The notes: generated by a model not told the origin, from the letters alone. A stretch of DNA of 64,000 nucleotides from Ramazzottius varieornatus (GCA_001949185.1 BDGG01000012.1:364973-428972); one strand, 5' to 3'; positions 55,143 to 62,512 are shown, counted from the first letter of the stretch. A program made the numbers and translations.

Positions 55143-57632
55143 ATGGGGAAGAAGCAGCATCAAAAGGATAAGCTGTACTTGACGACAACAGAATGGAGCA
55201 CGACATACGGAGGTCGAGCAGCGACACTGGCCAGTCTTCCTGGACAAAGCACGTTCCTTCGCTTCAAAAGGATACCTTTCGACTGCTGTGCTTTGTCACT
55301 TCAACCATTCGAGAATCCCTACATGTCTCCAGATGGTTATGTTTTCGATCTAACGTGAGTACAAGATGTGTATCGTTCGTTAATAGTTGAAACAACGAGT
55401 GGAAAGTCAATTAACAGGGGCAGTTAACGGTTCATGTACCTACATACAACTCCACCGTAAGATCCTATACCTTTGTGTACGTAGGTACATGGGAACCGGG
55501 TGTGTAGTGTTGCATCTAGGCATCTAAAGCTGTTCGTGGTTATGAACATTTTCCGCGTTACAGGAACATTCTGCCATATGTAAAGAAGTACGGAACTCAT
55601 CCCGTTACCGGCGAGCCTCTTCATGCAAAGTCCCTGATCAAGCTGAACTACTTCAAGAATTCCGAAGGTACAGCCGAAACAAAACATCGTTGTGATATAG
55701 TAGAAGATCGTTCTAATTGCAAGGTTCGAGAATCATTACTTTTCTTAAAGGAAAATACCACTGTCCTGCTGTCTACAAGCCTTTCACCGAGCATACCCAC
55801 ATAGTGGCCATCAAGACAACCGGCAACGTCTTCTCCTACGAGGTACCGTACAGCCGCTGCTTTATGTACGAGTGATGGTTTATCACCTAATAGTGACGCT
55901 CCATGCATGATGCGTTTGCTTATATGTCAGGGTGTTGAGACGCTGAACCTCAAACCGAAGAACCTCCGCGACCTTATCAACGATCAGCCTTTCGCGAAGA
56001 CCGACATCATATCCCTCCAAGACCCGAACAACTTAGACAGACTCAATTCGGAAAACTTCCATCACATCAAGAACAGCCTCAAAGCTACAGCCACTTCCGG
56101 TATGTCCAGATTTCGGATGAGTATCAGTGTACTGCCATATTGTCCAAATTTTACTTTCTAGCTGCCACTGCTGGACCTTCTGCCGAACTCAAAGGCATCA
56201 GTGTGGAAGCTAAACAAGCCTTGGCCGAACTCAAGAAGGACTACAAGAAACCCACAGACTCTTCGGTAAGTGACCGCAGCGATCTCTGTTAGGATACTTC
56301 AAAGCCTCGACTTACGTTTGGAGCTTCTACTTCTGCTTGCAGTTATTCCGAGACACAAGAGTGGTCTTTCGACAAGCTGCGACGGACAGCGTTAATGCGG
56401 CAAACTACTCTACCGGCCATGTGGCGGCAGGCTTCACCTCTACCGTCATGGAGCCCGTCACGTACCAGACAGCAGGTAAGCCTTAATATCCTTGTTTTGT
56501 GATCTCGAGAGCCACGAAGTTCACTTATATAAGTGTGATGTTTTCTAGCGAGACTTGACGACGAAACGATAAGATACGACCGAGTGAAAAAGCGCCAGAA
56601 GAAAGCATATGTTCGCCTTATAACGAACTTTGGGTCGCTGAATCTGGAACTACACGCTGACCTGGTGAGTGACAGAAAGCTTGACTTCGGTCCTCTAGCG
56701 AGTGTGTGGAAATCAATAGATTAATACTGAGTGTTCTGTTAGGTGCCGAAGACCTGCGATAACTTCATCAGGCACTGTCGAAGTGGATACTACACCAACA
56801 CGATATTCCATCGACTAATCAAGAACTTCATGATACAAGGCGGGGACCCAACAGGAACGGGCAAGGGTGGCGCGTCAGCGTTCGAAGGCGGGAAAGAGTT
56901 TGATGATGAACTTAAGACTGGCTTGAAGCACGATGTCCGAGGAATGTTGTGCATGGCCAATTCCGGACCCAACACGAACAAGTCTCAGTTCTTCATTATC
57001 TTCAGGTGAGTAGCTTTTCCTATGCATGTGAGCTACGCGAGGATGAGATGTTAGGGCTCTTTCCTTGATAGACCGCAGAAGCATCTCGACGGAAAGCACA
57101 CAGTCTTCGGGCGAGTAGTTGGTGGACTGGACGTGCTTAGTAAGCTGGAACAAATACCGGTGGACGATAAAGACAAACCGACACACGTGAGTGTAGTGAA
57201 TGCCTTTGGGGCTCAATAGTCTGTTAGGTATTGTCATGGTTCTTTCAGCGAATGTCGTTTTTTCGCAGGATATCAAAATTCTAAATGTTGAGATTTTCCA
57301 AGACCCGTTCACCGATGTCGAGAAGGAGATCGAGGCTGAACGGAACGCAAAAGTTAACGCGCTGGAGGAAGAGCTACGGCGAGAGCAAAGCGAGAAGGTA
57401 GCGGAAAGGAAACGAGTCAGGGAAGAGAAGCTGTCTAAGGACACCACTGTCGGGAAGTACCTCAAGCGAAGGTGAATTCGGTGTGCAAGTGCGTCTCGTC
57501 GTCTGGGAAATTATAAAGCTGTTATTGGTTTTCAGTGCAACGGGAAGTCGGGAAGACGACGATCTAGTCCCACGAGAAACTGCCGAGAAGAAAGCGAAGA
57601 AAGCCAGCAGTGGAAGCTTCAACAATTGGTGA
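55143..57632 (+). CDS. PPIL2: U-box cyclophilin PPIL2 (Cyp60)
   Basis: [76 protein letters not shown]. Confidence 0.95.
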
Positions 57633-57996
57633 CAGTTTGTGTTTTTATCTTGAACATATCTTTTAGTCTGAGAATTGTCGGAGAAGTCTTTTCCGCCGCT
57701 TCCGGCTAGTTCGACATGGAATGAAAGTGCGTCGTTTATCGCCTTGCGACTTTTGTCAGCCGACACGTGCAACAGTGCAGTAACGATACGATTACACCGA
57801 TCTGCTGCCATGAGGTTTGTGAACACCGATTAGAATGAACGAACATAAGGAAATGGCAATAAACATAGAGGACGGTGGAGAACCAAATGTGTACCTGCTG
57901 CCAACAGTTTGATTAACTTAATCAGTATCTTAATGTACACAGCTGCACAACAGCTCTAATACAGACACTATAGCCATTAGTGAATAGTGCAATCTT

Positions 57997-58061
57997 GAAA
58001 CGTTGTGACATCCGGTAAGAGGCGGCAAAATGCTTTAACCAATACCTTCATATAACGCTTC
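57997..58061 (-). promoter_or_regulatory. SECIS element (type II) of the selenoprotein W gene
   Basis: Minus strand GAAGCGUU-AU-AUGAA-GGUAUUGGU-UAAA-GCAUUUUGC-CGCCUCUUACC-GGAU-GUCAC-AACGUUUC: 8-bp helix I, AUGA/GA quartet, helix II, apical AAA with a mini-stem. Confidence 0.85.
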
Positions 58062-58115
58062 GTAATCGACGGTCCACTAGTGACTGAAACCACAAACCAT
58101 GGTTATACTGTAGTA

Positions 58116-60054
58116 CAGTGTACGCCAATATGGTCACCCGAAACTGGGCGGACTTTTTGGGCGTCAGCCAAGCCGCAGACGACCAGTTAAAAACCAGGAA
58201 AAGCGATCTGGTTGATTAGACATAGTTCATTAAACCTAAATAGGCACAGCTGATTGCTAATGAACCTGTTGCGCAACAGCCGGTAGTGCGATATACTGAG
58301 CTGTATTACCGAGCGATCCTTTCGGTCGCAAATTCTGATATCTTCTCGTGAATTCAAGATGGTTCGTGGTATACCAGTGGACCCAACCCTTGTCAGCGTT
58401 GTTTTCAAGTTGTTTTCAGAGAAAAACAAGAATCTGAGTGCTGTCGGTCGTGTGATGGGGAAAAACCACAAGTGGGTGAAGAACGTCATCGAGAGTTATG
58501 ATCCCGAAACCAAGAAGCGGAAAGTGGTGAAACCCAAGGGACGACCTCGTATCACGAGCGGGGAGCAGGACGCCGAAATGCTTGGGCTCGTTCAGGCAAA
58601 GCGGGAGCTGAGTGCGGCCAAGATCGCCGTTGAAACTGGACTCGCCCACCGGACGTTGCTGAACCAGCTTCGTGAGTTTAAGACTCGTCGATCCAAAGCT
58701 GTTCTCGACGAGTTAACCCAGGAGCACAAAGACAACCGGGTGTTCTGGTGCTCGTTCCAGCGTGAACAACTGCTGGAAAACCCTACCCTGTTCCATGATG
58801 TGGGTTTTAGTGACGAAGATCGTTCAACTTGCACGGTGGTAAGATCGAGGTAAATAATATTAACCTTCTGAAAATCAGTTCGTTTGACCTTCTAAATTCA
58901 TGAATCTCTGCTCTCGAAATTATTAAGATCTTCGAGAAGCAAGTTTGTCATTCGGAACCATTTTTCAATTTTTTGGTCAATTGTTTAAGGCTTTCGTCGA
59001 AAACGCAAGGTGCCTGTTAAATTTAACACGTTAACGCGTTAAATGAATCTGCTAAATTCGATCTACTTATCACTTATCGTTGTAGTGCTGGTACTTGAAA
59101 GAGGAAAACCGTCACGATAAAGACTTGCAAGTCGCCGTAGCTACGCGCATTAAAGGCGGGATCATGTTGTGGGGTGCCATCACAGCATGTGGACCTGTAG
59201 CGTTAATTCGAGTTGACGGTCGAATAGATTCGGGCGCCTACGAAGTTTTGTTCGAGCGACTACTTCCGTATCTTGAGAAGCATGGTCGGGATTTAGTGTT
59301 CCAGCAAGACAAGTGTTTAGTGCACACCTCTAGACGGTTGGGTCAATTTTTCTGGCGAGAAGGAATAGAAGTACGCTTTTTATTAAACAGTATTTTAATA
59401 TTTCTGTTTTCAATTTTTAAATTTACTAGAGCAGACCAATCGGTTGTTGAATCGAGCGAAAACGTTGCGGAAGGGTGCTAGGCGCGAAGGCGGATGAGCG
59501 GACTCAAAGTTTGTTTCTCGTAAAACAATAGTGCTTTTTATCTGATACGCCCATGTTACACAATACATCTTGTTTTTGGATAAACATAAGTACACAAATT
59601 TTTTGTACTTGTAGGTGTTGACATGGCCGTCTAGATCGCCAGACCTCAATGTCATCGAGAATGTCTGGGGAAAAATGAATATGTATATCTGCGATCGAAG
59701 ACCGAAAGATCTTGAGGAGCTTGACACTCTAATTCAGGAAGCATGGAAGGTAATTGTTACTCCCGAGTACTGCAGCAACCTGGTGAGCTCGATGTACAGC
59801 AGAATGACTGAGTGTATCAACAGCTCCGGTGCTCGCATCCCTTACTGAACTCATAATTTCATTTTCGGTTGTCTTTCGTGTTTTACCTCATGAGATTTCC
59901 TGTTTTATGGTATACGTTTCTGTTTTACTGTTAGTGTTCTGCTCATTGTAAAATAAATAAATCCAGCAGTTGGCTGTTGTTCATTGGTTATCGGCGTTGT
60001 GGTTGACGCCCAAAAACTCCGCCCAGTTTCGGGTGACCATATTGGCGTACACTG
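58116..60054 (+). mobile_element. Tc1-family DNA transposon, 1939 bp, with TA target-site duplication
   Basis: ~50-bp TIRs cagtgtacgccaatatggtcacccgaaactgggcgga..., TA at 58114-58115 and 60055-60056. Confidence 0.95.
58359..59848 (+). pseudogene. Tc1 DD34E transposase with two introns and a frameshift (exons 58359-58849, 59086-59370, 59615-59848)
   Basis: GRPR motif, FSDE, IMLWGAI, FQQD, WPSRSPDLNVIENVW; 34 residues between the second D and E; 1-nt deletion near 58823. Confidence 0.85.
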
Positions 60055-60140
60055 TACTTTGATAACAGGGTTGATTCAGGGAGTCAGCGACTTCCACTTC
60101 CGGCTTACCGACAGTGCTAATTAGAGCCGAAATGAGCTGC

Positions 60141-60787
60141 TTAAACGGTCTTGCCGACTACGGCGTCGCCTCCCTCCTGCGTTTCGCGTTCTTCCAAGGC
60201 CTGTTCGACGGCCATCATGATCTTCTGGAGCTTCGCAGGGGAGTCGACGAAGCCTTCGCCGCCCTACAATAACCGAAATTATCTTATATTGACACATCAG
60301 TGCAGAGAGATGCCACATACATCCTTGGAGTGAACCAGCTTTCCGTTCACTTCGACCTCGAACTTCCCGGTTCGTCCGGGCGTCGCTTGTCCAGTCTACA
60401 TCACAAAGTCATATTCAGTCCTTCAAGTTATCAGCACACGGGGCAAGGAAAATCTTTACTATATCGAGAGCAGAACCGCCATGGTATCGCTTAGTAAGTT
60501 CCGACTGGAAGTTGCGGAACTGCAAAGGAGATAAGGATTATACGTTACATGAAACTGATCACATGATCACATGCTCATAACGCTCCAGGAAACAAGCAAC
60601 GCGCTCACCTTGCTCCCGTAACCTCAGGCTCCGCTGCAACGAAAGAATATTTCAGCCCATTAGATACCAATAGCAAGTTTCTTCTCAAGCATGTATGAAG
60701 AAGAGGAAATCAGAAATCTCAAGACTGGAGTACAATAGTTTACCAGTAGACAACCCTGACGACCACTTTTCCTGCTTTTGACGCCAT
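60141..60787 (-). CDS. SELENOW: Selenoprotein W, 108 aa, Sec codon at 60624-60626 (exons 60787-60744, 60633-60609, 60519-60460, 60395-60321, 60263-60141)
   Basis: Spliced product MASKAGKVVVRVVYCGAUGYGSKFRNFQSELTKRYHGGSALDITGQATPGRTGKFEVEVNGKLVHSKDGGEGFVDSPAKLQKIMMAVEQALEERETQEGGDAVVGKTV; CxxU and GxFEV...LVHSK Rdx motifs; four in-phase GT-AG introns. Confidence 0.93.
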
Positions 60788-61142
60788 TCCGTCGTCTAGT
60801 TGTGTCGTGGAACCTGAAGCTGAATTACCCATAAAGTTATCCCGAGGATCACGAGAGAAAAGCTTTCGTATGCGTGGCTGCAGAACGAAGAAGACACAGA
60901 ACAATTTTTACCTGCAACAAAACCATCGGAGAAAAGTACTGTAGGAGGCTAGTTTGGCTAGCAGCGCCTTTGATGAGTCGAGGATGACTTGCAGTTTGAG
61001 AAAGTAGGAAAAGCCATGGAAAAGCCCAACTGCCAAAGGCAGCCTACAAAGTACGAAGTACGTGACAACAGTTGTCAATACAAAGTCGCAAGTAAAGACT
61101 GGAGACAAGCCATGAGTTTTTGATCGATCATTGACAAAGAGT

Positions 61143-61210
61143 GAAGTGGGCTTTATACTTATCATGATCCGGTAGATGGATCACCAATTTTTAGTATAAT
61201 AGCCCACTTC
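61143..61210. repeat. Hairpin / inverted repeat upstream of SelW
   Basis: gaagtgggctttatact ... agtataatagcccacttc with inner tgatcc/ggatca. Confidence 0.5.
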
Positions 61211-62512
61211 CCCAGATCACGGCCCTATTCACGGGTAATGATCATGAGTTGGGAATGGAGTGCGGAGACATGGATCATGGAATAGAAAACCATGATCCGC
61301 GCCGTTCGGTATGTGGACTTTTCAACGTGCAGTAGCACCTTGATTGAAAATGAGTTGATCGGACGGAAAACAAGGAATTACCTCGAGCTCCGACATTGTG
61401 AATACTCGTACAACAGAAATATCGAATAATGCACTCTTGCTGTGGATGGAATGTAAAATGATTACTGCTAGTATTTTCATATCGCTGACCAGGCGCCGAA
61501 ACTTGACAAACCTAGAATACCCAAATTCAATCAACACTAATAACTCAACTTCAACACGACACGGAAGGTTGAACGAGGGAGATATTCACAACCATGTAAG
61601 AACCTCGCGGTGATTCCCCCTACCGTTTCAACCAAGATTTTTAGCTAATCTGTAAATTTATTTCATCGAAACGTCAGTTCGATGGAGTGTATTTCAGATC
61701 TCGAAAAACACGAAGACCCCGACTCATTTTCATACGGGAAATAAGTCCGGATATTATACTTCGGCATAGGTCGTAACTTGGATCACCAGGGCAAGTATCA
61801 CGTTTCCACAACTTTCACATCCCGGGATGTGGCGAAAGGGGAAACGTGAGTGGAAAACGCGAACTGCCATTGTTTCCCGGGCATCGAGTGCGGAGAAATG
61901 AAGTAAAATGCCCACTTCAGTCCCTTCGGTCCTTCCCTCCGTTCCTCGAGTTCCCTCTGCTTTTGGCAGATAACTCCCAACGCCACCGAAAGCTGGAAAC
62001 CTGCATTCGCTTTCCCAGAAGTGAGACCTTTGAAGGATATTGGTCAAAATCATGCTGACGCAACCTAAAACACAGCTCGAACATCAACCGCAACCCGGAA
62101 GTCCCTATGTACCGTACGTTCGCGCAATCCACCTATATTTCGCCTCAAACTGTCCATCAGATCCATCCTTCATAGAAACGATAATTAAAACACAGCCAAG
62201 AGGCAAGCGATAACCAGACAGTTGAGTGGTAAAGAGTATTTTTCACTTACGACAGACCGATCACGTTCCAAATGCTGAAGAAGTAAAAAATATCAGGTGT
62301 GCGTGAAACTCTATAGAAAATCAAAACTTGCCAGATCAAAACCAAGATATGACAAAGGAATAAGGATAAAGGAAGTATTACAAACACACATAAAAGTAAA
62401 AAAATCAACATAATTACCGAAGAAACATTTTAGGGGACCATCTTTGATAGCACAAACCTTCGCAGAAGCTGCATTATTCTTGACTGAGGGGAAACCGTGT
62501 TGCTTGTATTCT

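Follow-up and report, generated by a model that had tools for sequence, protein, structure and literature searches.

The genes for selenoprotein W (SelW) and SelV in mammals consist of six exons; exons 1-5 hold the coding sequence, and exon 1 ends just before the CxxU motif. Their exon 6 contains only the distal 3' untranslated region (3'-UTR) with the selenocysteine (Sec) insertion sequence (SECIS), and the distance from the start of this exon to the SECIS core averages 38 nucleotides (nt) (Mariotti et al. 2012, PMC3316567). In Ciona, the open reading frame and the SECIS of SelW1 are found in one exon (PMC2874816). Tardigrades have been reported to possess many selenoproteins (PMC2768748). 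The present analysis concerns a SelW gene of the tardigrade Ramazzottius varieornatus, located on the minus strand of a 64,000-nt stretch of DNA (BDGG01000012.1:364973-428972, hereafter the window), and a Tc1-family DNA transposon that lies between its stop codon and its SECIS. In all likelihood, this is an old Tc1 element which inserted in a pre-existing SelW 3'-UTR intron, is still cleanly removed with it, and has been tolerated as a passenger. The gene model, the splice junction, the anatomy of the transposon, and its age relative to its family have been established and are described below.

The locus resembles the mammalian SelW and SelV genes in its six exons, in the placement of the coding sequence in exons 1-5, and in the end of exon 1 right before the CxxU motif. 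It also shares with them an intron in the 3'-UTR past the stop codon and a last exon carrying only distal 3'-UTR with the SECIS, whose core is situated 32 nt into the exon, compared to the mean of 38 nt in mammals. Unlike in mammals, a DNA transposon has swollen the tardigrade intron from ~84 to 2025 nt. That the introns occupy homologous positions is suggested by the published description of the mammalian genes.

A second group of related systems is formed by Tc1/mariner insertions in introns. As in these, the element is flanked by a TA duplication, ends in inverted repeats, and encodes a DD34E transposase akin to Sleeping Beauty; it lies antisense in the host intron, leaves splicing of the host undisturbed, and represents an old, diverged copy. 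It differs from them in that the host intron belongs to the 3'-UTR, between the stop codon and a SECIS needed on the same mRNA, so that early 3'-end formation in the element would abolish the protein and not merely shorten the UTR. In addition, the transposase gene of the element itself appears to contain introns. The third comparison is with mRNAs in which the SECIS acts over a long distance. As in these, one SECIS in the 3'-UTR serves an in-frame UGA upstream, the AUGA core and the UGA being 335 nt apart in the mature SelW mRNA. Unlike them, the mature SelW mRNA is ordinary, and a spacing of 2.4 kb occurs only in the pre-mRNA or in a form with retained intron. No publication describing a transposon in an intron between a stop codon and a SECIS was found in the literature searched, nor any paper that names a SECIS and a 3'-UTR intron together in those terms.

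The SelW gene and its 3'-UTR intron

The RNA data were taken from public runs as Logan contigs. Twenty runs of one species label contain the stretch, plus two others. Four runs (X1, X5, X10, and X13), from four studies, were examined over positions 57300-61300 of the window, and all transcript results given here refer to them. From the sequence and these contigs, the SelW gene was resolved into six exons on the minus strand, with the Sec-UGA at codon 18 and the intron in the 3'-UTR:

60744-60787, minus strand: SelW exon 1, coding part (ATG at 60787-60785, 14 codons and 2 nt of a Cys codon; joint 60633/60744 in 4 runs)
60609-60633, minus strand: SelW exon 2, 25 nt (completes C-G-A-U, with the Sec TGA of codon 18 at 60624-60622; joints 60519/60609 and 60633/60744 in 4 runs)
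60460-60519, minus strand: SelW exon 3, 20 codons (joints in 4 runs)
60321-60395, minus strand: SelW exon 4, 25 codons (most conserved Rdx block; contig joints)
60109-60263, minus strand: SelW exon 5 (final 40 codons, TAA, and 32 nt of 3'-UTR; joints 60262/60320 and 58083/60109)
58084-60108, minus strand: SelW 3'-UTR intron, 2025 nt (GT at 60108-60107, AG at 58085-58084; joint in 4 of 4 runs)
57815-58083, minus strand: SelW exon 6, terminal, 3'-UTR only (X13 contig joining 60262-60109 to 58083-57815)

The original prediction, made from the sequence alone, had placed the SelW stop codon at 60141-60143, and a TAA is indeed read at 60143-60141. It had also proposed that a strong donor (CG/GTAAGC, GT at 60108-60107) opens an intron in the 3'-UTR 32 nt after this stop. 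The donor is present, and all four runs use it. It is joined to the acceptor TTTGTGGTTTCAG, with AG at 58085-58084, and the resulting joint 58083/60109, expected from the prediction, was found in contigs of every run. A total of 2025 nt is skipped, with CT..AC on the plus strand corresponding to GT..AG on the SelW strand. Single contigs lead through exons 3-5 (X10) or 2-5 (X13) and then directly from 60109 to 58083, and the unitigs with this joint, which have contig depths of 81-340, are free of the four coding introns as well. The 3'-UTR intron thus exists as predicted, and RNA spliced at it is the main form. An alternative acceptor at 58109-58108, likewise proposed, was used in none of the four runs and was rejected.

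The joints of all four coding introns match the gene model in every run. The contigs behave as RNA in that introns are missing from them at GT..AG boundaries and the upstream stretch 61052-61300 is uncovered in all four runs. Contig pieces extend the SelW 5'-UTR to at least 60941, and the X13 contig extends exon 6 to at least 57815. Neither AATAAA nor ATTAAA was found on the SelW strand from exon 6 down to 57600 in a pattern count. For exon-junction-dependent decay, a usual limit of 50-55 nt past the stop is quoted in PMC4911915. The SelW junction, 32 nt past the stop, lies inside this limit, and the normal SelW stop should thus not be marked as premature.

The assignment to SelW is based on searches in which the exons were queried singly. 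The reading frame is unbroken through five exons, and the C-G-A-U form of the CxxU redox motif, with its in-frame TGA, spans the exon 1/2 junction, which is present in 4 of 4 runs. Exon 4 alone matches the Pfam family Rdx with 22.9 bits (cut-off 22.6), and among solved structures it comes closest to mouse selenoprotein W (2npb, residues 38-60, E 9.6e-4). Exon 5 gives a colinear but weak match to residues 63-87 of 2npb. A search of protein representatives with exon 5 returned no SelW relative; the single match, a repetitive protein of 1037 amino acids, was rejected as unrelated. A homologue search with exon 5, in a length window that shuts out full-length SelW, gave no match.

A profile search of the genome with PF10262 gave two further loci, L013 and L015. 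Neither is a close SelW copy and no SECIS match occurs in the flanks examined, so they offer no within-genome comparison for the SelW 3'-UTR intron. L015 contains a weak Rdx-like open frame (L015:1501-1683; G000:C11:791683-791865, plus strand; E 0.19) with a EINVDGRTLWSK block similar to the exon 4 motif of SelW. This frame is without a CxxU motif and has a single in-frame TGA elsewhere; it may represent a Cys-less or decayed Rdx relative.

The Tc1 element

The original prediction had a Tc1 transposon of 1939 bp beginning about 50 nt into the intron. The element was found to occupy 58116-60054, 52 nt from the donor and with TA on both sides, inside what is now a genuine 3'-UTR intron:

58116-60054, plus strand: Tc1-type (DD34E) DNA transposon, 1939 bp (inverted repeats, DDE_3, TA duplications at 58114-58115 and 60055-60056)
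58359-59848, plus strand: transposase gene (open blocks 58359-58838, 59086-59370, and 59615-59848, with two GT..AG gaps between them)

The transposase is antisense to SelW. The terminal inverted repeats measure 83 nt and are 87% complementary. DDE_3 was matched with 30.4 bits (cut-off 28.6) and a helix-turn-helix domain weakly. The last transposase block matches the Sleeping Beauty catalytic domain (5cr4) with E 1.4e-13. The transposase exon model was drawn from the window copy by open reading frames, splice dinucleotides, and frames; it is a prediction. On this predicted two-intron model, a hand count places 34 residues between the second D and the E, the signature of Tc1. According to the same model, the window copy alone is open in all three transposase blocks, and the other seven copies (L002-L008) are frame-shifted or stopped.

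These seven are the other full-length copies in the genome, and TA is found on both sides of all eight. Pairwise identity among the eight is 95-97%, in a star-like pattern, and each copy carries 22-40 private substitutions, of which the window copy has 31. Judging from this pattern and from the private substitutions, the window insertion is old and derives from a past burst. Imperfection of the inverted repeats (64-69 of 83 positions) is alike in every copy, which makes it a family trait and not a sign of decay. In run X10, an element variant without 50 nt at 59955-60006 was observed in a contig with the family's bases, and this variant thus comes from another copy, not from the SelW locus.

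From the donor to the insertion point there are 52 nt, and another 11 nt separate the insertion point from the likely branch site downstream of it, TATAAC at 58107-58102 as judged from the sequence. Donor, branch site, pyrimidine tract, and acceptor are all outside the element. The events may be pictured as follows. A Tc1-family transposon would have entered antisense at a TA within an existing SelW 3'-UTR intron of ~84 nt, sparing all these signals. The intron, grown to 2025 nt, is still removed at its original sites. As these sites are used, the mature SelW mRNA would be unaltered by the insertion, with the UGA at codon 18, the stop, a junction 32 nt after the stop, and the SECIS core another 32 nt beyond the junction.

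Pairing between the inverted repeats in the pre-mRNA might even assist splicing. On the SelW strand the repeats are predicted to form a duplex of -131.7 kcal/mol, compared to -39.9 +/- 4.8 for shuffled sequences, and the predicted fold of the whole intron contains 67 pairs linking the two repeat zones. Such pairing would draw the halves of the original intron together and may loop the element out. The duplex predicted for the ends of the element (59970-60058 and 58112-58200, minus strand) has ~41 consecutive pairs, and this stem, whose right arm no contig covers, could also serve as a substrate for RNA editing or small-RNA pathways.

Unspliced RNA and a possible regulatory role

RNA that still carries the element was detected at lower depth. 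Contigs from X1 cover 58274-60138 with one differing letter in total; being nearly letter-identical, they carry the private bases of the window copy. Their depth is 3.8-9.6, versus 134 for the exon contig, and one of them (depth 9.6) spans the end of the element and the donor into exon 5. Locus-specific element contigs also exist in X13 and X5, and over X1, X5, and X13 the element-carrying RNA of the locus reaches ~1-25% of the exon contig depth. Several element contigs in X5 and X10 show the family's bases at the private sites of the window copy, and consequently stem from other copies. No contig joint within the element fits the transposase introns in the four runs. Accordingly, the RNA specific to the locus resembles unspliced SelW precursor rather than transposase mRNA.

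In run X10, 12 sites over the exons examined (57436-57981, 60187, and 60851) deviate from the assembly, which points to a strain or population that has diverged but bears the same species label. The private bases of the window copy are absent from all X10 contigs over the element, though X10 has the greatest SelW contig depth among the four runs.

The original prediction included an AATAAA within the element, which a pattern count located on the SelW strand:

59379-59384, minus strand: AATAAA inside the element (ATTAAA also at 59399-59394)

From this, a role of the transposon as a regulatory switch could be envisaged, in which polyadenylation within the element or retention of the intron tunes SelW during desiccation, stress, or low selenium through SECIS-less RNAs ending at codon 18. 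Besides the two signals on the SelW strand, the element-carrying RNA in X1, X5, and X13 would agree with such a switch. So would the size of the intron: the mean intron lengths published for R. varieornatus are 158-402 nt (PMC5034306, PMC5531438), and the SelW intron is longer by a factor of about five to thirteen. However, the X1 contigs run on past AATAAA and ATTAAA with similar coverage on either side (depth 9.6 upstream, 3.8 across, and 7.6 downstream). The spliced form is dominant in all four runs from the four studies, and any long intron can be expected to leave some unspliced pre-mRNA at a low level. A switch derived from the transposon is unsupported and considered very unlikely.

An equally slight chance is given to a conditional gate, by which slowed splicing or use of AATAAA or ATTAAA, e.g., as animals enter or leave anhydrobiosis or run short of selenium, would generate SECIS-less RNA and turn the protein off. 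If true, it would constitute a transposon-built post-transcriptional control of a redox selenoprotein.

The proposal that SelW synthesis depends on splicing out the transposon was overstated. If the intron were retained, UGA and SECIS would still be part of one RNA, ~2.4 kb apart. Since the SECIS stays on unspliced RNA, SelW would depend more on transcription through the element without a premature 3' end than on splicing.

Origin of the intron

The SelW 3'-UTR intron is very probably older than the insertion. Minus the element and one TA it measures 84 nt, and the suggestion that it would then be like its neighbours holds, with coding introns of 57, 64, 89, and 110 nt; the element has enlarged it 24-fold. 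This size, the splice signals outside the element, and the plan shared with mammalian SelW and SelV all point to an intron that predates the transposon.

The reverse order of events, in which the element hit an uninterrupted 3'-UTR and cryptic GT and AG sites beside it were then recruited, would make the insertion itself the origin of the intron. This order is likewise considered very unlikely. Ciona SelW1 shows that SelW genes without this intron exist, and no empty site has been observed for the SelW insertion. On the other hand, the splice sites, likely branch site, and pyrimidine tract outside the element add up to a standard intron of 84 nt, a length usual at this locus, the GTAAGC donor is strong, and the layout fits that of mammalian SelW and SelV even in the distance from exon start to SECIS core.

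The putative SECIS hairpin and the weight of the evidence

A well-formed SECIS had been predicted beyond the acceptor. Its position was confirmed and its cores are in place, while its score stayed below the gathering score:

57999-58059, minus strand: SECIS hairpin (AUGA 58051-58048, unpaired AAA 58036-58034, GA 58012-58011; Rfam SECIS_1)

The Rfam match covers the full-length SECIS_1 model on the right strand and is the sole one in 57000-61500 (4.5 kb) on both strands. Its printed E of 2.3 counts 4227 Rfam families and corresponds to ~5e-4 for SECIS_1 alone, over 9 kb. The AUGA, AAA, and GA cores are correctly spaced, with the AAA 11 nt after the AUGA, and the predicted fold agrees with them. 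The match begins 24 nt into exon 6 and its AUGA core lies 32 nt into it. Contigs join 60109 to 58083, so the hairpin is on the exon spliced to that of the stop codon, as had been foreseen. From these features the hairpin at 57999-58059 probably works as a SECIS.

Several points weigh against the interpretation of the element as a tolerated passenger of an older intron. The SECIS_1 score of 20.3 bits is below the gathering score of 35, and a genome-wide search with RF00031 gave no match at E<=10. The RNA evidence consists of unstranded contigs, whose RNA nature is a guess; contig depths, as means per contig, are a poor gauge of isoform ratios, and contigs cannot show RNA ends or strand. The contigs place exon 6 only to at least 57815, and the 3' end of the mRNA is not among them. 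That the intron came before the insertion is deduced from intron size, splice sites outside the element, and the mammalian layout, and Ciona SelW1 demonstrates that the layout of stop codon, intron, and SECIS is not universal.

Concerning the hairpin, the SECIS_1 model is weak on divergent lineages, and the sub-threshold score lowers confidence without excluding the element. That the hairpin is not a working SECIS, in a SelW locus that is decaying or non-Sec with residual expression, is also considered very unlikely: the low score, the missing genome-level match, and a folding energy no better than that of shuffled sequences (z = -0.69) would fit it, but energy models leave the non-Watson-Crick SECIS core unscored, the frame is intact over five exons with its CGAU motif, SelW contig depth is high in every run, and the diverged run X10, with nine changes in 57596-57981 of exon 6, has none in the hairpin, where ~1.6 would be expected, a count that is only suggestive.

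A convergent neighbouring gene

A gene for a cyclophilin-type prolyl isomerase lies at 55600-57880 on the plus strand, convergent with SelW (Pro_isomerase E 2e-31 for the exon 56743-57006). A joint confirms the last intron of this gene (57470-57533); the stop codon is at 57630-57632, and an AATAAA is found at 57858-57863. The cyclophilin 3'-UTR and the SelW terminal exon share at least ~60 nt, and assemblers fuse both transcripts in one contig.

Significance

The old Tc1 insertion in the SelW 3'-UTR intron reveals no new mechanism; it is an ordinary intronic insertion in an unusual place. With this analysis, the gene set of Ramazzottius varieornatus gains a SelW gene that is modelled correctly, including its UGA codon. 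The SECIS-only last exon known from mammalian SelW and SelV is also present in a distant animal lineage, which suggests, by analogy between the two, that the 3'-UTR intron may be ancient. The layout of stop codon, intron, and SECIS common to the tardigrade and mammals might conceivably have been kept because an exon-junction complex beside the SECIS is important for Sec decoding or mRNA surveillance. Finally, the locus provides a natural example of an intron that absorbs a 24-fold enlargement while the recoding signal linked to its UGA remains undisturbed.

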